From Okamejei kenojei (Eukaryota), in the NCBI GenBank assembly GCA_035221665.1, contig CM069160.1, forward strand, positions 4,650,001 through 4,714,000: a DNA stretch of 64,000 bases, in the 5' to 3' direction. Shown here piece by piece: positions 1,774-61,580 of the stretch. The notes beneath the pieces were generated by a model. It made no database searches. It was not told the origin of the DNA and worked only from the letters and a program-made list of their open reading frames with translations. The position numbers were made by a program, and so were the translations under genes. How positions within the stretch are numbered: position 1 is the stretch's first letter; each line of letters opens with the position of its first letter.

Positions 1774-1814
1774 TTAGCAGTGCACGTTCTGGTTTGGTTG
1801 AATATTTTGATAAT
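1774..1814 (-). CDS. Cytoplasmic-tail exon of the class I-like gene: (D)YQNIQPNQNVHC* in phase 1
   Basis: Good acceptor (aatttccctcctcag|at tat caa aat att); YxxPhi motif; downstream of the TM exon. The phase-1 join needs one extra A in the TM exon's A6 run. Confidence 0.6.
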
Positions 1815-1944
1815 CTGAGGAGGGAAATTATATATTAGAGAACTAAGAAATGGCAGAGAACAGAACTCAGAAAGATGCAACTTGTTTATTCGCTTTAACT
1901 GTTGATCCATCCCACATAACATCCACCTTCCAGATATAATGGTA

Positions 1945-2190
1945 CAGGGCCAGACACCCGGATTTGATCCTGACTACGGGTGATGTCTGTACGGAATTTG
2001 TACCTTCTCCCTGTGACTGCATAGGTTTTCTCCAGGTGCTCCAGTTTCCTCCCACATTCCAAAGACAGACGTGCAGGTATGTAGGTTATTGACTTGTGTC
2101 CCTATATTATGTGGGTGATCGTTGGTTGGTGCGGACTCAGTGGGCCGAAATGTCTGTTTCAATGCTCTCTCTCTAAACTAAACAAAAAAC
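1945..2190 (+). mobile_element. HE1-type tRNA-derived SINE (5'-truncated)
   Basis: gatttgatcctgactacggg...ctccagtttcctcccacattccaaagac...gggccgaa...ctctaaactaaac. Confidence 0.8.
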
Positions 2191-2249
2191 TCAATGCTCC
2201 TTCAAATAGTTTTGTCCACACAAGTTCTACGTTTCCAACTTTCGCTTCC

Positions 2250-2445
2250 TCACTAGGGTCAAATTACAGAGACCAATTAATCCATAAACCCTGGCATCTT
2301 TGGTATGTGTGTGGAAACTGGAGTACAGTGGAAACCCATGCGGTCATGGGGAAAACATGCAAACTTCACACAGCCGACAACCGAGGTTAGGATTGAACTG
2401 ATGTCTCTGACGCTCTGAGGCAGCAGCTCTATCAGCTGCGCCACT
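2250..2445 (-). mobile_element. HE1-type SINE
   Basis: Reverse-strand SINE head (gtggcgcagctgatagagctgctgcctcagagcg) and body. Confidence 0.7.
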
Positions 2446-2959
2446 CATGTTCAGCACAAACGTTGTTGGACGACGGACCTGTTCCTCTATTACAGGGGCA
2501 TTCCCATGCACCGTAGAATTCAGCGAACTGAGCAACATTGGGTCACTGGAAGTATTCCCTGCCTGACGATCAGATCACATTGAAATGCCTCCAGATCAGT
2601 CGGACAGACACCAGTTAGGCAGCATCTGCCTGCAAATGATTCATGTCCCTCCAACCCCTGCATCTCCATGCACCCAGGAAGGTGCACACCAAACGCCACC
2701 ATCCCTGGCAGTGCTTCTCAGGCACACACCACATAGAGTGTAATAAAAACTTGCCCTTTTTTTAAAACTGCAGCTTCTACCCTGTACTGAATATAATGCA
2801 ATAAGTTAAATGTCATAGTAGGCATTTAGTTAATTGGGATAATTTTAGTCAATTGGGAGGTGTGATTGCAAATCCTATACAATATCATAAACCAAGTAAA
2901 ATGTGACAAAGTCAAAATGGCCCGGCACAAAGAACAGAATATTCATGAACATCGATAAC

Positions 2960-3520
2960 ATGTCAAGGTACTGAATAAAACAGTTGGGATGTTCTGCTAC
3001 AGTTGTACAAGATTCTGGTGCGGCCGCATATGGAGTATTGCGTTAAGTGTTGGTCACTCCACTATCGGAAGGATGTCATTAACAGGGCTTGAGATTCAGG
3101 GAGAGGATGGGCACGCTTGGACTTTATTCTTTGGCATCCAAGTGGCTGACGGGTGATCATATAGAGGTTTATAAAATCAAGGGGAACAGATAGATTGAAT
3201 GCATGGAATGTTTTAACCAGCCTTGTGTAATCAAGAACCAGAGGACTTAGGTTTAAGGTGAGAAGGAAACGAGTTATTCGGAACCATAGGAAGTGGAAAT
3301 ATGGAACATTCCAGGGGAAGGAGTCGAGGCAGGTATTAAAAAAGCATTTAGAACACACTTGGACAGGTACAAGTATAGTTTAATTGACCACTGTAAATTG
3401 CCCCTAGTAGGTGGGTGACTGGATGAGAAGGTGCAATAAGACAGAATTCATGAGAACAGGTGGTTGGTGGTTCGCATGGACTCAGTGGGCCAAAGGGACT
3501 GCTTGTATGCTGTACCTTTC
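2960..3520 (+). mobile_element. CR1-type LINE 3' fragment followed by a SINE tail
   Basis: LLQLYKILVRPHMEYC-like coding remnant, then the CR1 3' region. Confidence 0.7.
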
Positions 3521-3763
3521 GGATGATATCTCTAGGATTTGGTGCAGTGAATCCATAATGCCTACCTATTTATGTGACTCTGAATTCACAATTTTCAAAT
3601 ATCTGATTATCAAAAACATTTAACAACAGCACAAAGGCTAGTTGACAGTGGTGACTGGCGAGGCATTTCAGGTGTAGCTGCTGCCTTACCCTACTTGAGA
3701 TCAATCATTTCTTCAAGCCCAATACATTATTAGCAACAGTGCATTACAGTGTTTCCATCTTAC

Positions 3764-3873
3764 CTCTCCTCTTTTTTCTCTCCACCAAACAATAACTGCC
3801 AAGACAATAGCCAGTAATATCAGCACACACACGGCAATAAGGCCTATGTGCCTGTCTTTCTTCCTATTTCCTT
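3764..3873 (-). CDS. Connecting peptide and transmembrane exon of the class I-like gene
   Basis: ttatttttcag| (E)GNRKKDRHIGLIAVCVLILLAIVLAVIVWWREKRGE |gtaaga; long hydrophobic stretch plus basic stop-transfer residues; in frame with the 3' end of the alpha3 exon. Confidence 0.85.
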
Positions 3874-3957
3874 CTGAAAAATAAGAATGCATCATTTTTT
3901 ACAAATCAATTGTTAAGCTGTGCATCTAAATAGATTGGCACTGTCTGAAGACTTCAG

Positions 3958-4052
3958 GATGAAGAAGGGTCTCGACCCGAAATGCCACCTATTCCTTTTC
4001 TCCAGAGATGCTACCTGACCGCTGAGTTACTCCAGCATTTTGTGTCTATCTT
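3958..4052 (+). mobile_element. Short Penelope terminal-repeat derivative
   Basis: gaagaagggtctcgacccgaaa...ctccagagatgct...ctgagttactccagcattttgtgtctatc, same family as the 3' end of the Penelope at 30901. Confidence 0.75.
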
Positions 4053-4453
4053 TGGCGCTTTTCAAGGTATATAAATATGTTGTTTTGAATCATGGAGTTC
4101 TGCAGCATGGCAAAGGGACAATATCTGTTCTGTACAACTGTATGATCTATGGGACCATCACAGCCACAACTTAATTCAAGAAAGAAGGCGAAATGAAAGC
4201 AGAAAGCTTTAACCCTATATCACCGAACATCTGTTTTGGGGAAAATGCTGGATTCCTTTCAGTAATGGCAGAACATTTAATAATAACAAAATAATAAAGT
4301 GCATTAACAGGGCATTAATGGGAAAATTCTAGAAAGAAAGAGATGCAGATACTGATTTACACAAAAGCTTTAGTTTAGTTTATTGTCACGAGTATTGAGG
4401 TACAGTGAAAGGCTTTTGTTACGTGTTAACCAGTCAGTGGAAAGAATATACAT

Positions 4454-4608
4454 GATAGACACAAAATGCTGGAGTAACTCAGCGGAATAGCAACATCTCT
4501 GGCGAACATGTACTCAGTCAGAAGGATTGTGACCCGAAACATCAGCTATTCCTTTTCTCCAGAGATGCTGCCTGACCAGCTGAGTTATTCCAGCAATGTG
4601 TGTCCATC
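4454..4608. mobile_element. Fold-back (inverted) Penelope terminal-repeat mini-element
   Basis: Left arm gatagacacaaaatgctggagtaactcagc... is the reverse complement of right arm ...gctgagttattccagcaatgtgtgtccatc. Confidence 0.75.
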
Positions 4609-5068
4609 TATCTCCCTACACATGGACAGTTGACATTTCGTTTTGGGACCCTTCTTCAAATTTTGTTTGAGAAATTGATTAGAATTCTTTGAAAATGCAA
4701 CAGGAACCCGCAGACAATGTATATTCGAGCAGCAGTAGTTTGCAGGTGTGCACAGCCTAAAATTCAAAAACAAAATGATGGAAAAGCAGAATAGGTAACA
4801 AAATTGGAATGAGAAACAAAATAAATACAATATATTTGCACGGGTTATTGATAGGGGACGATCAGCCATGATCACAATGAATGACGGTGCTGGCTCGAAG
4901 GGCAGAATGGCCTCCTCCTGCACCTATTTTCTATGTTTCTATGTTTCTAAAATGTAGAGGTCCAAGCGTCGTGAACAAATCAATGTTTTTTTAAGATATA
5001 AACTGTTTCGGCACACTCGCGTTTAGTAAGGACTTGCGCAACGTTCCTGCCATTGTAATCGGGCACAC

Positions 5069-5160
5069 AAGAAGGGTCTCGACCCGAAACGTCGCCTATC
5101 TCCTTCGCTCCTTAGATGCTGCTGCACCCGCTGAGTTTCTCCAGCCTTTTGTGTACCCCC
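5069..5160 (+). mobile_element. Penelope terminal-repeat derivative with hammerhead-like core
   Basis: aagaagggtctcgacccgaaacgtcgcctat...; near-identical to 7755-7847. Confidence 0.8.
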
Positions 5161-5789
5161 AGTTGACTGACAAAAGTCACTGACAGCACGTCGCATCCTT
5201 AGATTAACTTTCCGAACCCTGTCATGAATGGGAAAAAACATGATAGTCCCAGCTCCCCTGACGAGGGGTTCTAGCAATAAGTGGCCTGACCACCAGATGT
5301 CGCCAGAATATCTGGAGTTTCATAAGATATCTGATCAAGTGATGCAAAGGCACATGGCTTATGACATTGGGGGTAATAATTAGCATGAATGGAAAAACAA
5401 TTAAGAGCAAGCAGAGAGTTGTCTTAAAGGAGTGTTCAGGTTGGGGAAACGGCAACTGCAGGTTGGGAATCAATGCACGAAAGTGAACTACTTATCGTTG
5501 GCATTAAGAGCAGGTGAAGGGACTGATGGTGCTGTAGCCTAGATTGCTGATGATAGATAGATAGGTTGGAAATTAAGTTTCGGAGTATGTCAACAGTCTT
5601 CAGAGTGAAACATCAGATTCCTTAGTTGTGCATTGTTCGAGGGAATCTTCAAAAGTGAGCATTTGTGTAGGTTAGTGCAGCATACTGGAATCAAATTGGT
5701 ACGATCACTGTTTGTCCGGCAGTTATATTTTTCGTTGCAGAAGCTGTAACTTGCGTCACAGAACTTACTTCATTAGGTTTCGTTTTAAT

Positions 5790-6500
5790 TAATGCCAGAT
5801 GTTTCAAGATACAGTGAAAAGGTTTTTTTTGCATGCTATCCAAACAAAATTAGATACTATACATAAATAAAAAAACTCAAAAACAATAGATAGAGCAAAG
5901 AGGAGGATACAGAGTACAGAATATAGTTCTCAACATTGTATCGCAATCAGTTCCACAGACAATATTCAATGTGTTATGAGGTTGAGGTGAATCGGGCATT
6001 AAACATACATTCTGGAAGGACACTTCCGAAGCCTGATAACAGATGGAAAGGGGGTGTTCCTGAGTCAGGCAGTGCATATTTTTAACTTTCTGTACCTATT
6101 GCCTGATGGGAGCAGGAAGGAGGAATGACCGGGGTGGGATAAGGCTCGTTTTTCCAAGGCAACCAGGTGTAGATTGAGTCAATAGTAGGAAGTCTGGCCT
6201 GTGTGATGATCTTTAACTCTGTGTATATTCTTGCAGTCTTGGGCAGTGCAGTTCCCAAATCAAGATGTGATGCAACTCACAACATGCTTTCTCAAGCGGC
6301 ATCTATAGATGTTTGCTGGAGTCACCAGAGACATGATGAATATTCCCAGTCTCCTGAGGAAGTAGATGTGCCGGTGTGCCTCCTTGGCTATGTGGTCAGT
6401 CCATGACAGAATATTGGATATATTCATGCCAAGGAACATGAAGCTCTCAATCATTTGCACTTCAGACCACTGATTCGGATTGGGGCATGTGCTCCCCCAG
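5790..6500 (-). mobile_element. Rex1/Babar-type LINE 3' fragment
   Basis: ORF 6260-6460: IESFMFLGMNISNILSWTDHIAKEAHRHIYFLRRL...IYRC, typical of the Rex1 RT C-terminus. Confidence 0.75.
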
Positions 6501-6817
6501 TGCCTTGCTGTTAATCACATCATGAGGAAAGATTATTTTTTTTATTTAAACGTACCTTTCATGGATTTCAGTTTCCACCACTGAGAATCCCAAATACTCC
6601 TTCCTTGTATCAGTTATTTATTTACTTTTGATAAATTTTCTGTTGACAAAGTCTTCTGCTCAAGTGGAGAGTGGGTGCTGATTACGTGATTGCTTAGAGC
6701 AACACCACTAAACAAATAAAGTTTAAGCATCTTGGAATATGGGATGTAGTCACAATGATTAAAATGGAAACAACAGAAGATAATGATTATCTACTAAATA
6801 ATATTTAATGTTCTTAC

Positions 6818-7083
6818 CCCAGATGATGGTCTTCCCACCGGGCAGGCTGCTGTGATCGACATGACAGGCATACTGTTTCCCATCATACGGATCATACTCA
6901 AGGACAGACTTAAATGATATGTTCCATCGTTGTTGGGTATGACCCCAGAAGATTTGGTCTCAGAGACATGTTGACCATTCTGCAACCAGCTGACATTGAT
7001 AGCCGGTGGGTAAAACCCAAACACAGTGCAGTACAGGACTGAATGATCATCAGGGCGGGCAGCGAGAGTGACCTCAGGGGAAA
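6818..7083 (-). CDS. MHC class I-like alpha3 (C1-set Ig) exon; 1-bp deletion near 6902 as assembled
   Basis: ttgtag| VSPEVTLAARPDDHSVLYCTVFGFYPPAINVSWLQNG...PNNDGTYHLSLS[frameshift]EYDPYDGKQYACHVDHSSLPGGKTIIW |gtaaga; CxxxGFYP, W, DGTY and YxCxVxHxSL motifs; exon is 266 nt versus 267 needed. Confidence 0.92.
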
Positions 7084-7129
7084 CTACAAGACAGTAAGTT
7101 GGTTATTTTCACCTTCAGTAAAACTTGCA

Positions 7130-7600
7130 GTCACTCACCAAAAATATTATTCAGTCTACTACAACCACCAAGTTACTGTCCTCATCTGCCCCATTTTGCC
7201 TCTTTCATCACCATCAACAAACCACGTGGTTTAATAAGGGATCGCACGCTCCCTGTTAAGGACAGTACACAAGAAAGTTTGAAAGCACGTACCATTAAAT
7301 TCAGGAACAGCTTCTTCCCCACTGTTATTGGACTACTGAATGATTCTCATGTAAGATAAGGTGTTGTCCTGATCTTCCAACCAATCTCATTGTGATCCTT
7401 GCAACTCTTTTTGATCTGCACCTTCTCTGTAACTGTAATGCTATGACATTGTAATTCTGCACTCTGAATATTGTTCTCTTTGCACTGTTCTACCTGTGGA
7501 TGGCTTGATTGCACATGTGTAGTATGATATGATTGGATAACACACAGGCAAACTTTAGACTATATCTCAGTTCATGTGACATCAATAAACTAATACCAAC
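7130..7600 (+). mobile_element. Rex1/Babar-type LINE 3' end
   Basis: SLKARTIKFRNSFFPTVIGLLN followed by the family 3' UTR and aataaac tail. Confidence 0.7.
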
Positions 7601-7754
7601 GGCAAATCTTTTCACTGCGGCACATTATTGATTATAATAAATAATTGAATGTTACAAAATGAGGGCCAATTGGGGAGGGGACAAGCTTAAATTGGCAGTA
7701 TTTTCACTCTTCTTCAATAAGAGATGAAAGGGACCAGTCATTGTATTAAAAATT

Positions 7755-7847
7755 CTGAGAAGGGTCTCGACCGAAACGTCGCCTATCTCCTTCGCTCCTT
7801 AGATGCTGCTGCACCCGCTGAGTTTCTCCAGCCTTTTGTGTACCCCC
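7755..7847 (+). mobile_element. Penelope terminal-repeat derivative with hammerhead-like core
   Basis: ctgagaagggtctcgaccgaaacgtcgcctat...; near-identical to 5069-5160. Confidence 0.8.
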
Positions 7848-8504
7848 ATTGTTTATAAATTCTCTTTTGCGGGAGTGTGGTCCATTCTCGCTGGCACTCT
7901 CAACCCCAGAGATTTGTGAAGACATAATCATTGGAAGTATTTAATGTGGCGGTCGATAAACGTTTGAAAGATTGCAGAATTCAGTGCAATGAGGAACTGC
8001 ACCGAACAGGAGTTGAGGCCCGAGGAAGGTCCAGCCATGGACATATTGAATGGTGGGCAGGTTTCAGGATCAAATGGCTTTACTCGGAAACTTGATAACC
8101 GAGGAGAAAATCAGGCTTCTGAATGATCATTCCGTCAGCTAGGGTACTGTCCAATTGACCACTACTTACTCCATTATAGACAGTGACTTTGTTTATGGAA
8201 CTATGTACAAGGAACTGTAGATGCTGGTTTAAACCGCAGATCTACACAAAATGCGAGCGTAACTCAATGGGTCAAGGCTAGCATCTTGGAAGAAGGAATG
8301 TGTCACGTTTCATGTTGAAACCCTTCTCATGGAAACTAGTGTGCACTACATTGCTGAGAACTATATGCGCACTGTAACATCCCCTTTACTCGACCTACAG
8401 TACCTTGAGTTTGACTTGATCAGATATATGCATGTTGTTATCATCATCCAATTGGATAGCATGCAAAACAAAGCTTTACACTGTTCCTCAGGACATGGGC
8501 AGCA

Positions 8505-8885
8505 CATGCACAGCGGGAAAGAGTTGCCTGCCTTTACAGTACCACAGACCAAGTTCAATCCCTGACAATGGTACTGGTCTAATGGAGTTCAGATATTCTT
8601 CTCCATTATTTTTGAGGAGGTGTGTTGGTGGGGGTGTGTCAGGGTGCTGGCGGGGGGGGGGGTGGGTGGGGTGTGTTAGGTTGAGTTAGTTTTGGGTTTT
8701 GGTTGGGGAGGGATAATGCGCCGGCTGCTCCATTCAGGCACATGCAAAGACGTGCAGGTATGTAAAGATTTTGGGCTGTCTGTAAGTGTCCTAGTGTGTA
8801 GGAATTTGAACTAATGTTGGGGTGTCTCGTTATCAGCACAGTTCAGTGGGCAAAAGGCCTATTTCCAAGCTGTACCTTCTAAAAT
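8505..8885 (+). mobile_element. Degenerate HE1-type SINE
   Basis: gcacagcgggaaagagttgcctgcctttacag...caaagacgtgcaggtatgt...gggcaaaaggcctatttcc. Confidence 0.65.
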
Positions 8886-10639
8886 AAAGTGACAATAATA
8901 ATCCTAAACATACCCCTTGCTAACTGTATATTAGTGCAAATCATCGGTGGGCTTTGCCCACAGGATCTCTCCCTCTACCTCTTCCCTCTCCCCTCTCCTC
9001 TCCCTCTCCTCTTCCCCCGGCAGAGTTTACTAATAAATAAATAGGGATTCTAACCACTAAGCGAAGTTGATCATCTTCGCACACGATCTCCTTGTTGTTG
9101 TTGGAACTAAGTGCAAGCCTGCTCTTAACTGGTGTAGCAGAACTGTTTATGTGTGACAAGTCATGAAAAAAAGTGTAAAAAGGTTAAAAAAAACACAAGT
9201 GAATTAACATGTTGAAAGAACAATGAGACTGTACAAATGTAGTGCACTACGGCACTGTTCCAGTGACGAGGTCCGAGCACAATCTTGAAACAGAAAAAAC
9301 TTAAACTGAAGCAGGTGACTCTACTTTCAACCATCCAGTGCTGTTATACACTGCCTTGCATGAGAAAATGGAAATTGGTTTTTCCTTGGGGCATAAAAAC
9401 AGACTTTTTCAAGAGACTTGGGAAGTTGCAAGCTAGTCCTGGAATTGGTGGATCTCTGCGAGCTGTCCAACGAGAACGTATTGTACTTTATGTACCGGAT
9501 GACTTGACTGGAGAGAATGCCGAAAAACATTCACTGCAGATAAGACACAAAAGGCTGGAGTAACTCACGGGACAAGGCAGCGCTCTGGAGAGAAGGGATG
9601 GGTGTCCAGCAATCTGCTGTTTCCATCCAAACCATTTTCACTGCATCTCTGCATTCAAGAAACCTAAACAGAGTGTTTAAAATACAGCACATACTTTAGC
9701 TATATGCATGGAGGTCAGGCTGTTTGTGATTTTGCAGGTGATAACGTAAATAATTTAAAAAAAAACACAAAAACGGGCAGGGTAACAGTGGCTCAGGCAG
9801 CATCGAAAGACAGGTTTACGTAAGTTACACTACGGATCCTTCTTCGTGCTTCTTGCATTCTGTTCTGTCTGAAACGTCAAACTTAACTGTTGAAATGACC
9901 AGTTCCGTTATCGACAGGGAATGCAACTCGTTGAATGTGGAATTTAGTATTGAAAGTTGCAAACCATGTCCAGGCAGAACGGATTTGTTGGTCCTCAAGG
10001 TTACTTTCAGCCTTGCTATCCTAGTGTAGTAGGTAAAGATGGATGGATAGTGGTGGGGGTCAAATGGAGAATTAAAGTGGCAGGAAATTGTGAATCTTAG
10101 AAAGTCCCATGGAGTGATAGGCGGGTTCTCCAGAAAGCAGCCATTCAACTTTGTTTTTCTATTGAATTCTACAATGTGGAAATTACAACATAAATACCAA
10201 ATGCAGTCTAATTTGACTGAAGTGCAAGTGTTTTCAAATGGTTTCACATTGAAGAACTGCCTGGGGCTATGGTCAAGGGAAGGGAAGAGGAGAAATGGAG
10301 AGGATGTTTGCATGCACCAAGACAGGAAAGTAAAGGAAAGTTGTGGGGATAGTAGAGCAGACCAAGGAGCAAACAGGGAATACTGGACATTTCAAAAACA
10401 TAGAATGGCGACACACAGAGCAGGAGGATGGTGGAAGAAATTGATTGACTAATTGAATCAGATTTAAACTGGAGCGAGGAATATTCACCATGCATATTCC
10501 TCCATGGAGAGTGGAAAACGTATCCCTGCCACTCGCCATTGAGAATATACATGACCATAGTACAGTAACAGTCACCAGAACAGGAGTTCAGCCTGTAATT
10601 GTCCATGTCGAACAGAATACCAAGTTAATACTAAGGCAA

Positions 10640-10945
10640 CACAGAAGCACAGTGAAAGAGTGGCTGTCCCATTACAGCATTAGAGACACGGGTTTGATCC
10701 TGACTCGAGTGCTGCCTGGACAAACAGTGGTTGTATGGGCTCTCTGTCTTCCTGTGGGTTTTCTCTGGGGGCCTCGGGGCGGTACTGCTTCCAAATACAA
10801 AAGGCATGCAGGTTAATTGCTTTTGTAAATGTTTCCCCTTGCTTGTAGACAGAAATAGTGAATGGGCAATTGCTGGTCATGCAGCACTCAGTGGCCCCAG
10901 GCGGTCCTGTTTCCATACACTATCTCTAAAACTAAATCAAAACTA
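10640..10945 (+). mobile_element. HE1-type SINE
   Basis: agagacacgggtttgatcctgac...ctctaaaactaaatcaaaac tail. Confidence 0.7.
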
Positions 10946-11149
10946 ATCTCCACTACTGATGTGATCCATAGCCGTGTATTCGCTGCATCTCCCGAGCCTT
11001 CCCAAGCCTTCTTAAGCACCATTATCAGGTCCCTCTAACCACCAACTCCTGGTACGAATTCTAGTACCACTCTCTCTGTGCAAAAAACAACTGACCGCAC
11101 ATCTCGTGTAATATGTTGCCCGTCGAAGCTAACGCTATGCTCTATAGAG

Positions 11150-11870
11150 AGTGTGATTGAGATGCAATCGTATTAGGGCGGTCAAACGTGGTCAAGAAAA
11201 TCCACGGTGAACTAATAGGAAGACATCAATTTACCACTTTCTCCCGGTCATAACAGGGATGTAATCTGAGTTCTAGAAGGCACCGGATCAAGCCCATATT
11301 GGAGAATTGTAGCAATTATGGCACCATATCCCCCCCCGGCGGGGGCCCCGGGGGGGGGGTGGGGGGGCTGAGGGAGGATGTGCGGCTCTGAGAGGTCCAG
11401 AGGAGGTGACAAGATTGATCCCAGGAATGAGTGGTTAACATATGATGAGCATTTTGATGCAGTTAACCCGTACCGTTCGCTGATTGTAGAAGAATAAGGA
11501 GGGACCTCATTGAACAACCATACCAAATAAGTGAACGGCTGGATAGAGAGGATGTCTCCACTGGTGGGAGAGTCTACGACATGGAGGTAATTGTCTCAAT
11601 ATTAAAGGACATTCTTTGGTGAAAGAAGATGAGGAGGAATATATATTGTCCAGAGGGTGGTGATTCTGTGAATTATTGGCCACAGAAGGCTTTGGAATCG
11701 TCAAGTGGATATTTATTTTTAAGGCATAGATGGAGTCTTGATTATATCAAGTCAGGGGTATGGGAGAAGCTGGAGAATGGAGTTAGGGGGAAGATAGATC
11801 AGCCATGATTGAAATGCGGAGTAGTCCTGATGGCCCGAATGTTCTAATGCTGGCACCCATCACTTAGGAC
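11150..11870 (+). mobile_element. Noisy CR1-type LINE 3' fragment
   Basis: Recognisable CR1 3' sequence (gggacctcattgaa..., gatcagccatgattgaa) with many indels. Confidence 0.6.
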
Positions 11871-12193
11871 CTTATGACTCTGTTGGTTTCCTCCCCATGT
11901 GATCCAGTTGTGGGTTCCAGATAACCGAAAAACGAGCCAGTGAGCTAGTCGACATTGCAAATTATCCGTAGTGACTGATGACACGGAAATCCGAGGGTGC
12001 TGAGTGCAAGTGTGAGAGAGAGAGAGCTGTGGAACAGTCCGTCGACATTGCATGAAAACTAGCCCTAGACCAATGGCCGAATTACCTTTCCCTCTGTCAT
12101 GATTGGTCAGAGATAATATTACCACTTGCCTCAAAAACAGGAAATATTACTAATGCCTACCACACAAAACAACATCCTTTGTTCTGAACTCAC

Positions 12194-12476
12194 CTTCTCT
12201 GGTCAGGTATGTCCTTTCCAATTCTAGTATGTATGCCATCAGAATCCACACAGTCCAGTGTCTAACAACTCTTGAAATAACGGTTCCATTGTTTCCAGTG
12301 CTTGTCCATTTCTCTTTTGAAGGGCTTCAGCTATTGGGTCTGGCACCGTCCACTTAGTTTGGTCTTTATCAAAACTCAATGCATCTCTTCCATCAAAAGC
12401 CAACTTCAATATCCCTACTTGGGAACTGTGATCGCTCACCTCACAACCAACTGTCCCGTGAACATAGACTGATAAT
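12194..12476 (-). CDS. MHC class I-like alpha2 exon, CD1-like; about 4 surplus bases as assembled
   Basis: ttttcgttcag|...YVHGTVGCEVSDHSSQVGILKLAFDGRDALSFDKDQTKWTVPDPIAEALQKRNGQALETMEPLFQELLDT[frameshift]DCVD[frameshift]LMAYILELERTYLTRE g|gtgagt; GCE, A(F)DGxDxxSF, W and the second Cys are present. Confidence 0.88.
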
Positions 12477-12569
12477 CTGAACGAAAAAAACAAAATCATT
12501 ATTTGATTCATGGTGATGACTGGGGTCATGTCTAACACCAGGTCCAATTCATGAATAATGTCACAAGTA

Positions 12570-13075
12570 GGCAAGGGTCACCGGACAGACCCCTGCAGAA
12601 CCCTAACTTGTCACTGGAACTAACAGCTGGCATATTCGGCCCTTCCATGCAACGGAGAGACCATATTATGAGTACGGTGTGAGCATGGACTTCACACCAC
12701 AACTGTCCAAGTCTCTCGATGGTACCTACATCCGAATGCTCCAATATTCAAAATGTCCATTGGAGGGGAACTCTCATCCACCAACACCCTGCTCTTGGGG
12801 AGACTCCACCTCTGACCGAGAGATCACGTTAAGCAGGAGAGGGCTCGCAGTCAACTGGCTCCGCCACCAATAAATGCCAGCAAACAAGGTTTGCTGTAGG
12901 GGACCCACCCATGGAAGACGAGACCTGGGTCGGCCAATCACGATGATGCCTGAAGATGGTGTAGGAAGACCCAACTGTAGAATAAAAGAGACTTGCCACT
13001 AGCATGGAAGACGAGATGTGTGTTGCTCCGTCATCGTGCCAGTCAAAAACCACATGGCACTATGTTTTCGACGAT
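12570..13075 (+). mobile_element. RTE-group (RTE-X-like) LINE 3' fragment
   Basis: LSKSLDGTYIRML...RRGLAVNWLRH...PTHGRRDLGRPITM remnants. Confidence 0.55.
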
Positions 13076-13231
13076 TATTATGATTATTATTAGTATTATC
13101 CATCATCATCCACACACCCCTCTGTCCTGGGGATTTATCCACATTTCCCTTCAAGTGACGCCAACATCTCCTTCTTGCTTAACTTCCAAAGTGCACCCTG
13201 CATGTTACATTCTCCACAGTGATTCTCCAGT

Positions 13232-14010
13232 TAAGAAAGAACTGCAGATGTTAAAGCAAAGTAGATCACTAAATACTGGAGTAACCAGCGGATCAGGCAG
13301 CGTCGCTCGATAGAAGGAAGGGGCGTCGTGTTTTGGTCGAGGAACCCGTCTTCAGACTGATGTTAGGGAGAGGACAAAAAATAAGAGTGTAGGCGGAGAC
13401 ATAAGACTGGTGAGGGAGAAGTGGGAAGGGGAGGGGACGGAAGAGAAATCAAGGCGATCGAAAGTTAGAGACGTCAATGTTTCATACCGCTGGAGTGTAG
13501 ACTGCCCACGAAATTTGAGGGTCCTGTTCCTCCAATTTGTGCGCTGGGGCCCTCACGCTGACAACTGGAGAGAGGCCCGGAACAGAAACATCAGATTGGA
13601 AATGGGAAGGGAGTTGAAGTGCGAACCACTGAGGGAGATCAGGGAGGATAAGATGGACTGAAGCGAGTGTTCAACAAAATGATCGCCGAGCCTGCGCTTG
13701 GTCTCGTCGATGTAACAGAAGATGAGCAACGGAATACAGCGGATACACTAATGAAAGTTGGAGGAGCAAGTGAACAGCTGCCTCACCTTCTGGAAGGCTT
13801 TGGGTCCATTGGATGTATCGAGGTCGGGACCTAAAGGAACGGTTGTTGCATCTCTACGGAATGGAGGAAAAAGTGTCTGGGGAGGGGGTGGTTTTGGGGT
13901 GCGAAGGACGAGTTGACCCAGGGAATGTTCGGAGGGACGATCTCTGCGAAAGCAGAAAGGGTGAGATGGGAAGATGTCGGATCCTGTTGCAGGTGGCGAA
14001 AATGTTGGAA
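13232..14010 (-). mobile_element. Penelope-like element 3' fragment (GIY-YIG region plus terminal repeat)
   Basis: Colinear with 30901-31650; noisy sequence. Confidence 0.75.
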
Positions 14011-14384
14011 GGATTATATGCTACTTATAATTAAAAGTCCTTGCTTTTCTGCGGGGGGGGGGGGGGCAATGGGCGTTCTTGGTGAAACAAATGCAAAAGT
14101 AGGGGAGGGAGGAAACTTTTTCTAATCTCTTTTACCTCGATGTAGATGAGACCATTTTTATTTTTTCCGTATCTATCTCCGTCCACACTGAAGCCTAACA
14201 GCGAGGTGTTGGCGCCTTTGCTTTGCATTTTTGTAGTGTGACTGTAATGTAATCGGAATTTCATTGCACTTAAGTTTACATTGACGCAAGAAGCTGACCT
14301 TGAACATTGGAAAAAGATGAGGGATTTTCGTATTCTGACTCGCACAAGCCAATTTGTGGGCCTCTATTGGCCCCTTTATTTTAA

Positions 14385-14735
14385 GCTTTAGAGATACAAG
14401 CGCAGAAACAGGCCCGTCAGCCACACTAAGGTCAGGGGGGGGGGGGGGGGGGAGGTGGTGTGGGGGGGGGGGGGGGGGGGGGGACGGGGGGGGGGGTGGG
14501 GGGGGGGGGTTTTATTCTAAGCCGATTTACCTAAAAACTTTAGAGTGGTCTTTGGAGTGTGGGAGGAAACCAACCGAAATCCGCGTAGAAAAACCCCCGT
14601 AGTCCAAGGGAGAACGTACAAACTCCTTACAGACAGAGCAATCCGTAGTCATGATAGGAACGGAGCGGGTCTCCAACGCTGGCAGGTGCTGCAAGGCGAG
14701 CAACTCCTCCATAGGCTGTGCCAACTGTGCCACCC
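14385..14735 (-). mobile_element. HE1-type SINE containing poly-G noise
   Basis: tttagagatacaagcgcagaaacaggccc...ggagtgtgggaggaaacc...gggagaacgtacaaactcc. Confidence 0.7.
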
Positions 14736-14932
14736 TCGTAATCACACACTTGAGTTATTCCTCTCTTGGGTAGATAGGTTATAGTGATATGGATTTCTTT
14801 ACATTCCTCAAAGCTCCTGCCATGATTTTCCATCCTCCTGAACCTTACATGCACTTTCTTTTTTTTTTTTGTGTGTTCCTTACTAATTAAACTTTAAAAA
14901 AACCTTTTGGTTATGCAAGCTTCAATTCTTAC

Positions 14933-15224
14933 CATTTCTTTCCTTTGCCATTTCATCCTTTCCTCAACACTGGAACTGGGTAATAAATCACTCATACATA
15001 ATCATGGGGAGTCTCGGTAACAAGGACATTGTAACCCGGGCACGCAACATCTGCATGTCCCATTTCCCCCCCTGGTGCTTATAATGCAGAATACTTCCTA
15101 GTTTCAATGGGATTTTTCTGTTGCTGCCAATAATATAAACACCTATTGCCACCATGCATGAAGTCAACAACTAATTTCAAGAAAACTTAAACGAGCAAAA
15201 GACGCCAGACGCTGTGACTATCAC
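14933..15224 (-). CDS. Probable MHC class I-like alpha1 exon, heavily corrupted
   Basis: Begins GDSHSVWRL (compare GSHS-L-Y); internal YY..SNRKIP and WDMQMLRAR remnants; ends at donor atg|gtaaga; size and position fit alpha1, but the acceptor is unclear and the frame is broken. Confidence 0.5.
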
Positions 15225-17098: not shown

Positions 17099-17598
17099 NN
17101 NNNNNNNNNNNNNNNNNNNNNNNNNNNNNNNNNNNNNNNNNNNNNNNNNNNNNNNNNNNNNNNNNNNNNNNNNNNNNNNNNNNNNNNNNNNNNNNNNNNN
17201 NNNNNNNNNNNNNNNNNNNNNNNNNNNNNNNNNNNNNNNNNNNNNNNNNNNNNNNNNNNNNNNNNNNNNNNNNNNNNNNNNNNNNNNNNNNNNNNNNNNN
17301 NNNNNNNNNNNNNNNNNNNNNNNNNNNNNNNNNNNNNNNNNNNNNNNNNNNNNNNNNNNNNNNNNNNNNNNNNNNNNNNNNNNNNNNNNNNNNNNNNNNN
17401 NNNNNNNNNNNNNNNNNNNNNNNNNNNNNNNNNNNNNNNNNNNNNNNNNNNNNNNNNNNNNNNNNNNNNNNNNNNNNNNNNNNNNNNNNNNNNNNNNNNN
17501 NNNNNNNNNNNNNNNNNNNNNNNNNNNNNNNNNNNNNNNNNNNNNNNNNNNNNNNNNNNNNNNNNNNNNNNNNNNNNNNNNNNNNNNNNNNNNNNNNN
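17099..17598. other. Assembly gap (500 N)
   Basis: Run of N. Confidence 1.
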
Positions 17599-18719: not shown

Positions 18720-21700
18720 TTAGACGGCACCTTTACTTGCTCGGGACATAGAGCGGTGGAGACGCCGCCCAGGGAGCGGGACGCCCCTCCAAGACAATGT
18801 AGTGAAGGTGCAATTGGTTTTGGATGATATTGATGAAGAAAATCGTTCGCAGCAGGATACCTCGAAATTTGAAGGAGACAAGTTCAGTATATTTTGACAT
18901 TACCGGATGGAGGTTGCCAGAAAAGAGGTTGTTTACAGACACAAGAAGATATCTTAAGAATATAAAAAACTGAGGTTTGGACTGATGTTACCCTGCAATA
19001 TGGAGACTCCACCTACGACAATGCAAGGATACTTCTTTTCACCAAGCATACCAAAGAGGCCTTTAAATTTGCAAAGAAACATGAGACATTGAGATACTGA
19101 GAAACATCGAGAGCGGAGAGTGACAAAGAGGATTAATACTTAACACTTAAATATACGCCTGATGTTATTGGATTTGGTCTTTACTGGTGTTAAGAAATTG
19201 AATTTTAAATTACTATACTCAAGGACTGTCTTGAATTTCTAGAATGAAATTGGGTAGTTATCTTGTATTGTTATATATTATTTTATATTGTAGTACTATT
19301 ATTACTAATCACTTACTAATCTTAATTACTAATTATATTAATTTAATTAACTGATCAGTCAGAATTAGCTAAAGGGATGATTATTAAGTTGATGAAAATA
19401 TAAAATGGAGGTTTATCATTGATATTTAATACTATTTGACTAATCGCGGACTAATTCTTTGGTTATATGAGGACTTATATGTTTTCTTACTTTGAGATAT
19501 TATATTATTCCACTACNNNNNNNNNNNNNNNNNNNNNNNNNNNNNNNNNNNNNNNNNNNNNNNNNNNNNNNNNNNNNNNNNNNNNNNNNNNNNNNNNNNN
19601 NNNNNNNNNNNNNNNNNNNNNNNNNNNNNNNNNNNNNNNNNNNNNNNTGAAATTGAAGCTTTTCTTTTAAGGAAAGTACGGAGCTAGTAATATTTTTTTT
19701 TTACCAAAAGCTACGGAAGACCTTAGATGTCTAGCCACATTAGGGTGGCTTATTACTAACTGCACTGATTGTAGATGTAGTTTTTTTCTTTCTTTTACAC
19801 TTTACTAATTTAACAATCTCTTATCTTTTCTATTTTATATTATATTATAATCATTATAATCGTTATTTTGAATGGAATTATAAGTATTATTTAAGGAGAT
19901 ATGACCGAGAAGAAAACCTACAAGATCTAAAACTCATCTATCTGAGGTTAGGAGGTAAAGGTATGGTTTAACGTGCTGAATCATCTGCTCTATTATAGAC
20001 CACCTTAATCATAAGATGCAAGACGTAAAAGTGAAAACTGGGGGTGAAGGAATTACATTCTGTAGTTGGAATGTTAAGGGAATTAATGAACCCATCAAGA
20101 GAGGCAAAGTATTAGCTCATTTAAAATCGCTTAAAACAGATATAATTTTCCTCCAAGAGACTCACCTTAAAAAGGAAGCACAACATAGACTGAAAACAAA
20201 ATGGATTGCTCAAACGTATCATTCCTCATTCACACATAAATCTAGAGGGGTTGCAATTTTAATCCGTAAAGGTATACCTTTCAAACATATATCAACTATA
20301 GAAGATATTGATGGTAGATATATTGTAGTAGTAGGCAAATTATACTCAAAAAAAAAACGTTATACTCAAAAAAAGTTACTCTCCTTAATGTATATGGACC
20401 AAAATTTTGATAGCCCATTGTTCTTCAAGAGAATACTTAATACTATACCGGAATGCACACAAATAGTTTAATAATTGGTAGAGACTTAAATTGTACACTA
20501 GATTCTTATTTAGACAGATCATCAACTCAAAGAAAATCAAAATCTCCGTAAAGTGAATTTTTAAACTCATATATTAACACTACCAACATTAAGGATGTCT
20601 GGAGAAATGAAAAATCCAAACCGGACGAGAATATTCATTTTACTCACCTGTGCATAAAATATTCAAGGATAGACTATTTCTTAGTAGATTCTAAACTTAT
20701 TCCATTTACCTACAAATCGCAATATCATAATATTATAATTTTGGACCATGCTCCATTAACGTTTATGATTAAACTAAACGAAATGGACAAGAAACAGACA
20801 CAATGGGAGACTTAATCCGCAAATTTTTAAATGAAAAAGGTATGTTGTGAATATCTTGTAAAACAGATTAATATGTTTTTCGAGGTCAATGACCAGCCTG
20901 AAATTTCTGCTTCCCTTCTCTGGGAAACAGTTAAAGCGTTTATACGAGTGGCATTAATATCCTCCCAGGCATTTCTTAATAAAGAGAATAGGGCTAAACA
21001 ACAGACATTGGAAATGGAAATAAGGCAATTAGACATAGAAAAAGCAGGAGCACCTTCATTGGCAAAACATAATAAAATTGCAGCACTGAAATATAAGTTA
21101 AATAAAATATACTCTGACCAAGTAATAAAACTTTATCAACACACAAAACAATTACATTTTGAATTCGGTGATAAACCTCAAAAACTATTAGCACGTCAGC
21201 TATGTAAATTGGACGGGGAAAAAACGATTCATAAAATTAGATCAGATAAGGGAGAAATACTAACACTCCCTAAAGTTTTTAATGACAGATTTTCACAATA
21301 CTATCAATATCTTTATTCAACTAAAGTGACAGAACAATCAACAGGAATGGAAGCATTTTTACAGAAATGTAACCTTAAAGGTTTAGATTTGCAAGAGCAA
21401 GAACTATTAGATGCTGAAATAACGATAAAAGATATCGAACAGTCAATTAGATCTTTAAAAAATGGAAAGGCCACAGGCCCTGATGGCCTAAGCCATTTTA
21501 TGATCTTATTTCTCCACGCTTATAAACATTGTATGAACACGTTTATACTCAACAGAAACTCCCGGAAACTTTAAACAAATCTACAATAATACTTATTCCC
21601 AAAACTGATAAGGATCTGGAAGACCCGGCTTCATATAGAGCAATAGCTCTTTTAAATCCTGATCAGAAAAATATTAAACTAAAATCCTATCCATTAGATT

Positions 21701-24170
21701 GAGCTTAGTGATTAACAAATTAATACACCCCCAACCAAACTGGTTTTATCCCCAAAATGTCACTCATTTTACAATCTGAGACGATTATTTAATATTTATA
21801 TACTCAAATAGAATTGCTTAATGCAGATCTAGCAATTATTTTGCTAGATGCTGAAAAAAAAGTCTTTGATCAGGTAGATGGTCATATTTATTTTCGGTGA
21901 TGGAAAAATTTCAATTGGGAGACAAGTACTGTACATGGGTTAAACTTTTTTTACTCTAACCCAACAGCTAGAATACTAACAAACCAAAATGTTATCAACT
22001 AAATTTAATCTTTCTAGAGGTTGTAGACAAGGATGCCCGCTATCTCCATTATTATTCGCTTTAGCAATTGAACACACTCGCAGAAAGTGTCAGATCTCAT
22101 CCAGAAATACATGGGTATAATACAAGAGACACGATAAATACAATCTCTTTATGATGTTATTAATATATATTACAAAGCCAGAAATTAGTATTACAAATTT
22201 ATTAAATCTAATAACTTAATTTGGTCAGTTTTCAGGAAATAGAATTAATTGGAATAAAAGCGAAATCATGCCAATAAATGGAACTCAATTTAATACACTA
22301 CAACAATCACCTTTCAAAAATAGTTGAGGTAAAATTTAAATATTTAGGTATTTATGTAACTAAGACGTATACTTCTTTATTTAAATCAACTTTTCCACCT
22401 TTACTGAATAAATTAAACAAGGAATATTCAATATTGGAAAACACTTCCCATTTCAATGTTCGGTTAGAATTAATGCTATAAAAATTATCTTTTTGCCGCA
22501 ATTATTGTACTTATTCCAGTCAATCCCGACATACATTCCAAAATATATATATTTTTTAAAGTAGACTCTACTGTTACAAGTTTCTTCTGGGATTATAAGA
22601 ATCATAGAATAAGTAAAAAACATTTATGTAAATCAAACATTAATGGAGGTATAGCTCTACCAAATTTTGTTTTATTTTTGGGCAGTCCATATTAAAAAAC
22701 ATGAATTTTTGGCTGGAAGAAATGGATCAACAACCAGACTGGTTAAGGATGGAAAAGGAGGACTGTTTACCTTTTGAAATCTGTTCGATTATATTTGCAC
22801 CGACAACATTGCACAAAAAGACCTATAGGAAAACCTTTAATATATAGTGGTACACGAATCTGGAAACAATTTAAAAAGGCTTTAAAACTGGATAATATGT
22901 CACTCTGTCTCCCTATTGTAAACAATCCTTATTCAAATCTTCCCATGCTGGATAAAGGTTTCACACAATGGAAAAATTATGGAAATCAAAAAGATGGAAC
23001 ATCTTTATAAGAAAGGCACTTTTCTTTTATTTCAGGAATTACAAAAGATTTTATGGTTTACACTCAAATATTTTGTTTGATATCTACAACTCAGAGATTA
23101 GTTAAATCAAATACACAAGATTATAGGAATTAGGGAACCACAAATCCTTGATGAATGTTTGAATAAGCATCCTAATACAGAAAATAACTAACAACTTATA
23201 TTTATAATATCCTTTTAGATAGCGAGGTACCATCGACGGAATCACATAGACATACATGGGAAAATTAATTAAGCCAACCCATAATGAAAGATATTTGGGA
23301 CAAAGGTTTAGAATATATACATCAATGCTCGTTAAATGCCAGACATGCTTTAATACAATTTAAAGTATTACATAGATTACATTACTCAAAAGTTAAACTG
23401 AATAGAATCTTTCCACATGTCTCTCCTATCTGCGATAAATGTCAGCATCTAGAGGCTAACTTAACACATACTTTTTCAAATTGTATAAAAATTAAACATT
23501 TCTGGATTGAGATTTTTAGAATAACTTCTGAAGTTATTAATACTAAACTGGATCCGGACTCAAAACTAATAATACTTGGAATATCAGAACAAAGTTTAAC
23601 ACTTACAACAAGCCAAAGAAATGTCCTAGATTACAGTATAATAATCGGGAAGAAATTAATATTAAAATTTTGGAAAGGCCCTATAACCCCCACAATTAAA
23701 ATGTGGATTATGGAAATGTCGGACACCCTACACCTGGAAAGAATCAGATTTGCCTTAATGGACAAACAAGAACTCTTCGTTAGAATATGGTCTTCTTTCA
23801 TTGATTACTTAAAAGGGTAGATTGGTTCGGCAGAGGAACCTAACTGAAACTTGGACTCAGGATCAGATGAAAAGTTATACTCTATATTCCTTGATCTTAT
23901 CTCCAATGATGTATTAATGGTAAATTATTCCATTCCTTATGATTTATTTTTGATTTTTTTTCTCTTTTTTTTCTCTCTCTCTTTTTTTATTACTCTTAAT
24001 CTATTAAAAAAACTATTAGAGGCGGAATGATTCAATTGATAATATTAATAATGTATGATTGATGTACACGAAATATTTTACCATAATATGTGTTTGCCAA
24101 TTTATTGCTTACCTCTAATAAAAATATATTTAAAAAAAAAACACAAAAAAACAAACTAAACTAAACTAAA
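18720..24170 (+). mobile_element. L1-clade LINE: ORF1 3' end, AT-rich spacer, frameshifted ORF2, poly(A)
   Basis: ORF2 from 20016: APE endonuclease (SWNVKGIN, FLQETH, SRGVAILI), KATGPDG, RT RQGCPLSP near 22025, C-terminal CDKC-H-C knuckle in ORF 23284-23820; AATAAA at 24117 and A-rich tail. Confidence 0.93.
19517..19647. other. Assembly gap (131 N)
   Basis: Run of N. Confidence 1.
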
Positions 24171-24400
24171 GAGAAAACAGATAATGTTTCAGATCTGCGA
24201 CCTGTGTTCTGAACTGAGCAAAAAGGAAACAGAATCTTGTAACATTTTCCACTTTTATTTTAGATATCCAGCATCTGCAGTTTCTTTTTACATTTTCATT
24301 TACTGTGCATGAATGTATATTGACCAACCACTGAATGTGTCAAAATGTTTGATTTGCAAATTGCATGGATTTACCATCCAGATTTATTTTTCCTCTTCAG

Positions 24401-24924
24401 TCCCAATCAAACTGAAGCTGAATCCGGACACTGCACATCCAAGACTCATCCTCTCCAGTGACCTGACAGCCATAAGACTCGGTGCTAAACAGAAGGTCCC
24501 TGACAAACCAGAGCGATTTGTGCAGTGGCACGGTGTCCTGGCATCTCAGGGCTTCAAAACTGGGAGCCACTACTGGGAGGTCGACGTCGGAAAGAACACC
24601 ATGTGGAGTGTGGGAGTGGTAAAAGCATCGGTACTGAGGAAAGCGGAGTTCACACCGGAACCAAAATCCGGTGCCTGGGTATTGTGGCGGCTGGGAGAGG
24701 AATATACCACAATGTCTTCCCCACGTACTGCCCTCCCTGTTCTAGTCAAACCCCAGAGATTGGGCATCCACCTGAACTATGAGGCTGGCCAGGTGACACT
24801 ATACAATGCCGATGACATGTCACATATGTACACTTTCAGGGACAAATTCACTGAGAAACTCTATCCTTTCTTCTTAACGGGTTGCAACATTGATTCATTA
24901 CAAATAGTCCACTTGCATATATAG
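24401..24924 (+). CDS. Terminal PRY/SPRY (B30.2) exon of a TRIM-like (or butyrophilin-like) gene
   Basis: tttttcctcttcag| phase 1 PIKLKLNPDTAHPRLILS...PERF...GSHYWEVDV...WSVGV...RLGIHLNYEAGQVTLYN...EKLYPFF...*; open frame; ATTAAA at 25111; upstream exons not found. Confidence 0.93.
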
Positions 24925-43742: not shown

Positions 43743-44645
43743 TTACATCCGCACCAGTTTCAAGAGATTACTCAAAAACCGGGTTACATGGCTAATCGCG
43801 TTCTTCACCTCCTCTCTGAATTTTTTCTGTGTCATTCCGTAGATACACGTGTTGGCGCAGGAGTTGACATAGATAAGTAGGACACCCACCTCATTGGCGA
43901 TATATGAGGGACTCGTATGATTTCCATCGGCGGGACTGACAGTGACTCGAGTGCAGACGAAGGTCACAGTTTCCGTTGTCCACAGCAGTATATAGACGCC
44001 GGACACAGTGAAGAGTAAAACGATGGATTTACGCCGATTCTCCGCCTCAGTGTCATTGCCTTCCAGCCCTTTCAGCCGCCGGCGGACCCTGCTGGCCGCT
44101 ACGATGTTCTTGACCGTCAATCCGTTAAAGAATAGGATTAGAAGGAAAGGGAGGAATGAGAGAGAGACGCTACACATCCAGGAGAACATGATCCACCAGA
44201 TGGAGGTCAGATAGGCGGCTTTGGGCCAGCACCCCCAGTTCACATTGTCCTTGGTGAAGCGCGGCTCGTACATGAACAAAAAGGGGATGTACTTTATGCA
44301 GCTCAGCGCACACATGGACACAATGACTGTGACGGCCGTCCTATCCGTGCAATATGTGAGTCTCAGCTTCGGGCAGCAAATGCTGACAAAACGGTCAAAG
44401 GTGAAAAGACACGGTTAACCAGACGGAGTAGTCCAGGGTGACGATCCGCAGGTAAACGTCGGACGGACACACTGCGCTGAGGGAGAGGAAAGAGTTCGGG
44501 TTGTAGTAACCGTAGATTCCTTGCAGCAACACGTGGAAGATGATCACCAGCAGACCGGACATTGCCATCGCCAACATGTAACGCGTGATTCCTTTGGTGA
44601 GACCACACTTTCCCCGGCACAGGATCGCAGCCGTCAGTACGTTCG
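43743..44645 (-). CDS. GPR139/GPR142-like class A GPCR, gene A, exon 2; 1-bp insertion at 44404-44407 (pseudogene or sequencing error)
   Basis: cttcctccag| ANVLTAAILCRGKCGLTKGITRYMLAMA...DYSVWLTVSF[frameshift]TFDRFVSICC...LPFLLILFFNGLTV...NRRKSIVLLFTVSG...NSCANTCIYGMTQKKFREE...*. Confidence 0.9.
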
Positions 44646-44854
44646 CTGGAGGAAGCACAGAACACTTCGATATAATTATATAAAACAGAGCAACCAATTA
44701 ATAGAACACAAAGTTTCTGCGTTCAGTGCGATGCCATCAATTCAGATGAATCGCGGAGGCAACTAAAAATTAAAGACAATTCGTTCATTAGTGAAAGGAA
44801 TGCAAAAAACATCATCACGTGTTGCTATTGTACTTGCGTTTCGCTTGGTTGTAT

Positions 44855-61251: not shown

Positions 61252-61321
61252 ATGCAGGGAAAAGAGGCGGCTGATGCGACCATTATTTGCTACCCGATTC
61301 TTGCAATTATCGGTATCCCAG
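61252..61321 (+). CDS. GPCR gene B, exon 1 (MQGKEAADATIICYPILAIIGIP); alternative in-frame ATG at 61240
   Basis: 70-nt coding exon with cca g|gtgagt donor; phase 1. Confidence 0.88.
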
Positions 61322-61580
61322 GTGAGTTATTTTGTTGCCACCTCCGTCGCTTTACTTCTGATTATCTCTTTCCGGAGTATCTACTCTTTTCAGTTTCAGT
61401 CTAGTTTCTTGTCACGTATAGCGAGGTGCAGTGAAAGCCTTTCTTGCGTGTTAACCAGTCAGCGGAACGTCAATGCATGATTACAGCCGAGCCATCCACA
61501 GTGAACAAATACCCGATACAGATAATAACGTGAATAACGTTTAGTGCAAGATAAAGTCGAGTAAAGTCCGATCAAAGATA

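Follow-up and report, generated by a model that had tools for sequence, protein, structure and literature searches.

We analysed a stretch of 64,000 nucleotides (nt) from the skate Okamejei kenojei (GenBank assembly GCA_035221665.1, contig CM069160.1, positions 4,650,001 to 4,714,000), here called the window and numbered from its first letter. The minus strand of the window carries four colinear exons of a major histocompatibility complex (MHC) class I heavy chain, which are real and which we assign below to the elasmobranch lineage UGA. The exons and their frame pieces were analysed singly, and the exon lengths of the family (270, 267 and 108 nt) were derived from intact UGA-family proteins. 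The alpha2 exon (12194-12468) is 275 nt long against 270 nt in the UGA family, with acceptor TTATCAG/ and donor G/GTGAGT, the slash marking the exon boundary. It is followed on the same strand by the alpha3 exon, of the immunoglobulin (Ig) C1-set type, at 6818-7083 (266 nt against 267 in the family; acceptor TTGTAG/, donor G/GTAAGA), by an exon for the connecting peptide and transmembrane (TM) segment at 3764-3873 (110 nt against 108), and by a cytoplasmic tail exon at 1774-1814 that reads DYQNIQPNQNVHC followed by a stop. The splice sites of this four-exon model are canonical at 7/7 positions, and this copy retains all four domain cysteines as well as the placement of the tail stop.

Each exon was recognized by at least one domain or family model. 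With Pfam, the alpha2 piece was assigned to MHC_I (E 4.9e-7) and alpha3 to C1-set (E 2.3e-12), while the UGA-family profiles matched alpha2 (E 1.3e-21), the two frame pieces of alpha3 (E 5e-31 and 2.5e-15), the TM exon (E 7e-21) and the tail exon (E 6e-4). When these profiles were run over all six frames of the 64-kb window, no matches were obtained besides alpha2, alpha3, TM and tail.

The top sequence match of alpha2 in the PDB was 9CH4_A (E 9e-7), followed by chicken YF1*7.1, MR1 and ZAG; entry 9CH4 is titled ‘Crystal structure of shark nonclassical MHC CLASS I, UGA’ and was released on 2026-03-18. An intact homologue from Leucoraja (P0032) matched 9CH4 with an E value of 1e-114, the next matches being MR1 and chicken BF2 at about 1e-48. 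An exhaustive HMMER search recovered skate and shark proteins, the closest of which were P0003 (Leucoraja erinacea), P0030 (Amblyraja) and P0040 (Rhinoraja longicauda). These relatives are labelled by NCBI as ‘class I histocompatibility antigen, F10 alpha chain-like’ or ‘MR1-like’ and include Amblyraja radiata XP_032898133.1, Leucoraja erinacea XP_055521885.1 and proteins of Rhinoraja longicauda, Pristis, Hemitrygon, Mobula and many sharks. Because the best matches include 9CH4, titled as UGA, we conclude from sequence comparison that the locus is a non-classical class I locus of lineage UGA, and neither UFA nor a new lineage. An initial annotation of the window, made from its letters alone, had suggested UFA or a new lineage; it came close in pointing to an already-proposed CD1-like elasmobranch lineage, but by the title of 9CH4 that lineage is UGA.

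Intact UGA members (XP_032898133.1, XP_055521885.1 and the shark 9CH4) are heavy chains of about 335-340 amino acids (aa). Residues Y7, Y59, K146, W147 and Y171, in human leukocyte antigen (HLA) numbering, are conserved across the UGA-family alignment, and the YxxPhi motif of the tail is kept throughout the family, as DYQNI or DYQTI in skates, DYE.I in stingrays and.YN.V in sharks. The exon with DYQNI is present in this copy (1774-1814), yet it is out of phase with the assembled TM exon. The locus does not belong to classical UAA, because the classical shark chain 6LUP matched alpha2 far more weakly (E 2e-3) than UGA did, and because the UGA family lacks T143 and Y159 and thereby differs from classical class I (F at 143, L at 159). 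In trees built without named UFA, UDA or UEA reference sequences, alpha3 of this copy fell within the skate clade with support of 100/99 and a terminal branch of 0.011, and alpha2 fell on a long branch of 0.71 without resolution of its position.

Compared with UGA members (among them 9CH4, XP_032898133.1, XP_055521885.1, XP_078272153.1 and nine more from Rhinoraja longicauda), the locus has homologous, colinear alpha2, alpha3, TM and tail exons, encodes the same DYQNI tail as skate members, and is adjoined by GPR139-like genes, as is the Leucoraja locus. It differs in its diverged alpha2, about ten frame breaks, an out-of-phase tail, and the absence of leader and alpha1 from the assembled sequence. 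Alpha2 is only about 75% identical to every skate UGA member (70-74% to skate UGA in its first half), with 12/47 residues changed, and its in-frame half carries Q117H, F120V, Y142D, L151T and H156P, at positions where 15 family members show little or no variation. Identity to skate UGA is 91-97% in alpha3 (6/88 residues changed) and 86-94% in the TM exon, and for the tail the figures are 85-92% with Amblyraja and Leucoraja and 69-77% with Rhinoraja, which has DYQTI. No protein like this copy was found in a collection of 5.8 billion sequences, the search with the 76-aa alpha2 piece covering only proteins of 42-133 aa.

The reading frame of the assembled copy is broken about ten times overall, in alpha2, in alpha3 and in the phase between TM and tail. 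The first 48 codons of alpha2 (12326-12469) stay in one frame, and the breaks cluster in the second half of the exon (12197-12326, minus strand), where frameshift-aware alignment to P0030 and P0040 gave about eight frame switches in the last ~135 nt. These were placed as a +1 at ~12322-12325, a likely +1/-1 pair at ~12303-12318, a -1 at ~12269, a +1 at ~12256, a -1 at ~12239, a +1 at ~12226 and a +1 at 12213. The -1 at ~12269 and the +1 at ~12256 are an alternative to a single-frame path through the in-frame TAG at 12262-12264. The frame-switching path recovers, in turn, LLDT, DCVDS, WHTY, RIGK and TYLTRE. Read from its acceptor, alpha2 stays open through 76 codons until it meets TGA 12242-12244, 48 nt short of the donor. 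Beyond PDPIAE this open frame departs from the ancestral frame, and its stretch ALQKRNGQALETMEPLFQELLDTGLCG resembles no UGA-family member. The alternative frame, PFKREMDKHWKQWNRYFKS, shares 60% identity with skate proteins and has PFKEKWDKNEKMNRYFKS as its family counterpart. The K146 and W147 codons of the family KEKW are still visible in the DNA of this copy, and a likely extra A together with a missing G (the pair at ~12303-12318) would turn KEKW into KREM.

Alpha3 and the phase between TM and tail are affected as well. Alpha3 is short by one nucleotide at ~6912-6913, where it reads TYH/KSV (the slash here marking the break) against TYHLKSV in the family. The TM exon ends in phase 0 (GAG/GTAAGA) as opposed to phase 1 in the family, the change in length lying within AGAGAAAAAAGAGG. 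In the family phase, the tail exon reads (D)YQNIQPNQNVHC and a stop; in the phase dictated by the assembled TM exon it reads IIKIFNQTRTCTANQTLSRKISWM and a stop (1740-1814), beginning IIKIFNQT. The YxxPhi motif thus falls outside the predicted product. The lengths of alpha2, alpha3 and TM (275, 266 and 110 nt) are each 2 mod 3, and the assembled copy is unable to encode a heavy chain. A complete heavy-chain gene in one open frame was not found, for which the assembly rather than the gene may be responsible. The coding sequence of this genome seems to carry clustered 1-nt indels, and these would mislead any reading based on frames.

The initial annotation had described five colinear class I exons; alpha2, alpha3, TM and tail were confirmed, but its alpha1 exon (14930-15224, minus strand) was not. 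The proposed exon is split across three frames, and Pfam found no MHC_I match in its pieces at E<=10. No alpha1 exon was found by tblastn with five alpha1 domains, and over the whole window the UGA-family profiles for alpha1 (best E>=5) and for the leader (25 columns, best E 1.8) detected nothing. Frameshift-tolerant alignment of protein to DNA at the proposed exon scored 32-40 against shuffle means of 33-39; as a positive control, the broken half of alpha2 scored 108 against 29±5 for shuffles. Extending the alpha1 alignment over positions 1-24000 of the minus strand gave nothing that exceeded the shuffles. Two weak alpha1-like fragments in the intron between alpha2 and alpha3 (9699-9749 and 9314-9382, minus strand), with nothing between them, were judged to be chance, and a ‘SDYQ’ resemblance to the alpha1 end, immediately in front of the alpha2 acceptor, arises from that splice acceptor. 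Upstream of alpha2, starting 4.6 kb away, lies a run of 500 Ns (17099-17598), and a second N run of 131 bases (19517-19647) also lies upstream of the class I exons. Should leader and alpha1 exons exist, they could sit inside the run at 17099-17598 or beyond it.

The clustered frame breaks bear directly on the proposal that the locus encodes a CD1-like lipid presenter. The initial annotation had reported T143L, K146R and W147N as lost peptide anchors, an argument that fails because the alpha2 helix residues come from a shifted frame; when the family frame is followed, the text agrees with the UGA consensus and the codons for K146 and W147 can be seen. Its CD1d-like FQELLDTDC comes from a reading that crosses a frame break, the open frame giving FQELLDTGLCGF and a stop. 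The other CD1d-like stretch, AFDGRDALSF, is indeed present at about 12380-12409, but it is not specific to CD1: AFDG.D..SF is general to class I, as in the chicken YF1 and MR1 matches. No CD1 chain occurred among the best 60 PDB sequence matches of alpha2, nor among the best 60 of the intact skate homologue P0032, and in sequence similarity CD1 does not rank above MR1, chicken YF1, ZAG or classical class I. A fold search that used a model of the intact Amblyraja homologue returned UGA 9CH4 with a Z of 20.0 and chicken CD1-1 and CD1-2 with 17.1 and 16.4, level with ZAG, YF1, BF2 and FcRn and all below UGA; the AlphaFold2 (AF2) model was poor (predicted local distance difference test, pLDDT, 65; alpha1 below 50) and served for the retrieval of entry titles, not for assessment of the groove.

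One likeness to CD1 lies in the tail, where the exon of this copy encodes a YxxPhi endosomal sorting motif (YQNI). The differences are that CD1 and this locus have no specific sequence relationship, and that the UGA family retains Y7, Y59, K146, W147 and Y171, all of which CD1 lacks. The next-best PDB matches of alpha2 after UGA, chicken YF1*7.1 (an Rfp-Y class I molecule that presents lipids and N-acylated amino acids) and MR1 (E 2e-6 to 4e-6), are likewise non-classical class I molecules, and their ligands are small or hydrophobic, but they belong to other lineages and taxa and are far more distant than UGA, YF1 having 30% identity in the structural alignment.

The idea of a CD1-like class I molecule in elasmobranchs is not new, since UFA and UGA have already been so described. 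A CD1-like elasmobranch lineage, UFA, in a class Ib cluster is mentioned in PMC10751288 (2023), the supplements of which contain no mention of UFA, skate accessions or GPR139. Both UFA and UGA are called CD1-like in PMC12562908 (2025), where a personal communication states that a crystal structure and mass spectrometry suggest for UFA/UGA lipids like those of human CD1d. The description of the locus as CD1-like is in line with what the literature (PMC10751288, PMC12562908) calls the lineage, but the sequence evidence offered for it does not hold. The initial annotation had also taken the locus as evidence for an ancient lipid-presentation system; the field has already proposed such a system, and this locus adds nothing to the proposal.

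In our reading, the locus is a paralogous UGA copy within a skate-type cluster in which UGA genes are interleaved with GPR139-like receptor genes, its alpha2 strongly diverged and its alpha3, TM and tail near-ancestral for skates. The frame breaks would be consensus errors laid over a real divergent paralogue, a likelier origin for them than decay. We give roughly even chances to this explanation, an intact but divergent UGA paralogue whose breaks are assembly consensus errors. Nearly all of the ~10 frame-breaking events are of 1 nt, and three +1/-1 pairs lie 10-13 nt apart. The frame-corrected path has no nonsense codon, and all seven splice sites and the domain cysteines are retained. A neighbouring G-protein-coupled receptor (GPCR) open reading frame (ORF), otherwise intact, contains a single surplus T within a T-run. 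An assembly gap near the gene may be marked by the 500 Ns that begin 4.6 kb upstream, although runs of N can also be deliberate masking. If the breaks are errors, the product would be expected, by analogy with other UGA, to pair with beta2-microglobulin, to be sorted to endosomes through YQNI and to bind a hydrophobic ligand.

Several observations weigh against an intact gene. Eight breaks in 135 nt, compared with 0 in the adjoining 144 nt, are extreme even for a noisy assembly; the other coding sequence of the window has one break in about 2,400 nt, and both the GPCR at 62132-63016 and the PRY/SPRY exon at 24313-24924 are intact. Alpha2 is unique sequence, in which short-read polishing should have cleaned up errors. 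The substitutions Q117H, F120V, Y142D, L151T and H156P would also fit relaxed constraint, the 5.8-billion-sequence collection holds no protein like this copy, and neither alpha1 nor leader was detected in the assembled DNA of the window. The locus could instead be a true UGA pseudogene or fragment, with substitutions and small indels acquired after constraint was lost, the leader and alpha1 lost or cut off, and the 3’ half homogenised with functional neighbours by gene conversion, an explanation that we consider less probable but entirely serious. Class I clusters commonly carry pseudogenes, and much of what was found here is compatible with one, including exon lengths that are all 2 mod 3 (275, 266 and 110 nt against 270, 267 and 108), an open alpha2 frame that halts at TGA 12242-12244, a tail out of phase, alpha1 and leader undetectable in the window, changes at family-invariant alpha2 residues, an alpha2 branch of 0.71 against 0.011 for alpha3, no matching protein or transcript-derived ORF in the databases, and other coding ORFs in the window that are intact. 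The kind of change speaks the other way. The ratio of indels to substitutions is about 1:4 overall and about 8:13 in the C-terminal half of alpha2, whereas the usual ratio in vertebrate pseudogenes is roughly 1:10, far below these values. The breaks are nearly all of 1 nt, several of them compensating each other within 10-13 nt, no nonsense substitution was seen, splice sites, cysteines and the position of the tail stop are kept, and a like break occurs in the neighbouring, otherwise intact GPCR.

The sharp contrast in divergence between alpha2 (12/47 residues changed) and alpha3 (6/88) might also be produced by a mis-joined or chimeric assembly, in which a diverged alpha2 and a near-ancestral alpha3, TM and tail from different copies or haplotypes were joined near a gap. 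The two N runs within 8 kb upstream and the multi-copy nature of the family in skates (a single Rhinoraja chromosome carries at least 10 of its proteins) would be consistent with such an event, but the exons follow one another in order along a single strand, their splice sites are canonical and the introns between them are of plausible size, no junction was seen, and an alpha1/alpha2 divergence that is uneven with that of alpha3/TM is normal in class I paralogues; we regard a chimera as improbable. More improbable still, to the point that we give it very little weight, is the new CD1-like or CD1-orthologous lineage of the initial annotation, with a CD1d-like alpha2 devoid of peptide anchors. 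The YxxPhi tail of the family is like that of CD1b, and lipid binding by UFA/UGA has been reported (PMC12562908). A new lineage is contradicted by the UGA identity of the locus, a lineage already named and solved, by the lack of CD1 in the best 60 PDB matches of both alpha2 and the intact skate protein, by CD1d-like text that is out of frame, and by K146/W147 codons that are still visible in a family that conserves K146, W147, Y7, Y59 and Y171.

For the genome itself, we tentatively propose, at somewhat less than even chances, that it carries an intact, strongly diverged UGA paralogue, with alpha2 about 25% off other skate UGA and altered at several family-invariant residues, a conserved alpha3, TM and YQNI tail, and breaks that are errors. 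If true, such an intact diverged paralogue would suggest that ligand specificity has diversified among the copies of a skate UGA cluster. From the assembly as it stands, the locus cannot be treated as a working gene. The yield of the analysis is in large part corrective: the assignment to UGA, the ‘lost anchors’ traced to an out-of-frame reading, and an alpha1 exon left unsupported.

The surroundings of the class I copy resemble those of UGA in another skate, as the window carries two GPR139-like genes, matching the context of the Leucoraja UGA locus. The main coding exon of one of them (43791-44649, minus strand; about 285 codons) is intact but for one extra T in the T-run GTGTCTTTTCACC (~44405), which shifts the frame inside the conserved FTFDRF motif and reflects either an indel of the assembly or inactivation in the very recent past. 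The second receptor, on the plus strand (62132-63016), is an intact ORF of 294 aa (7tm_1, E 2e-20) with 41% identity to the Leucoraja ‘probable GPR139’ XP_055521888.1 and an upstream piece at ~61285-61323. Between the class I copy and the receptors, an intact plus-strand ORF of 203 aa (24313-24924) encodes PRY and SPRY (B30.2) domains (E 5e-18 and 9e-22) and probably forms the final exon of a TRIM- or butyrophilin-like gene. In Leucoraja erinacea, the NCBI models of LOC129716032 (isoforms P0003, P0028, P0029, P0031 and P0042) fuse UGA exons to a downstream GPR139 and hold both MHC_I and 7tm_1 domains. The fusion is probably read-through or mis-modelling, and the fused models indicate that the UGA and GPR139 families are adjacent on one strand.

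UGA was given as single- or low-copy in a 2025 review. At least 10 distinct UGA-type proteins of Rhinoraja longicauda (P0040 and P0054-P0062; XP_078272016 to XP_078272546), nine of them with a DYQTI tail, are encoded on one chromosome of 41.5 Mb, and the lineage seems to be expanded and multi-copy in skates. A much more divergent class I gene of Leucoraja erinacea (P0026, XP_055486430.1, ‘MR1-like, partial’), on the same 127-kb contig as the UGA copy P0033 and adjacent to it in accession number, is a candidate member of UFA, the other lineage called CD1-like. The intron directly after alpha3 in the window (6762-6817, minus strand) translates as GKNIKYYLVDNHYLLLFPF, which is close to the read-through C-terminus of the P0033 model, GKNVKYSFIDNHYLLLFPF; therefore, intron sequence is conserved between skate copies.

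Repeated sequences were also observed in the window. Two minus-strand copies of a repeat in the introns flanking alpha3 (5026-5319 and 7749-7940) share the ORF text GGTQKAGETQRVQQHLRSEGDRRRFG, had no Pfam match and are probably an interspersed element. ORF fragments at 20016-23820 (plus strand), 25805-26209 (minus strand) and 49835-50269 (minus strand), of which one piece was tried against Pfam without a match, have the look of an endonuclease/reverse transcriptase of the long interspersed nuclear element (LINE) type.

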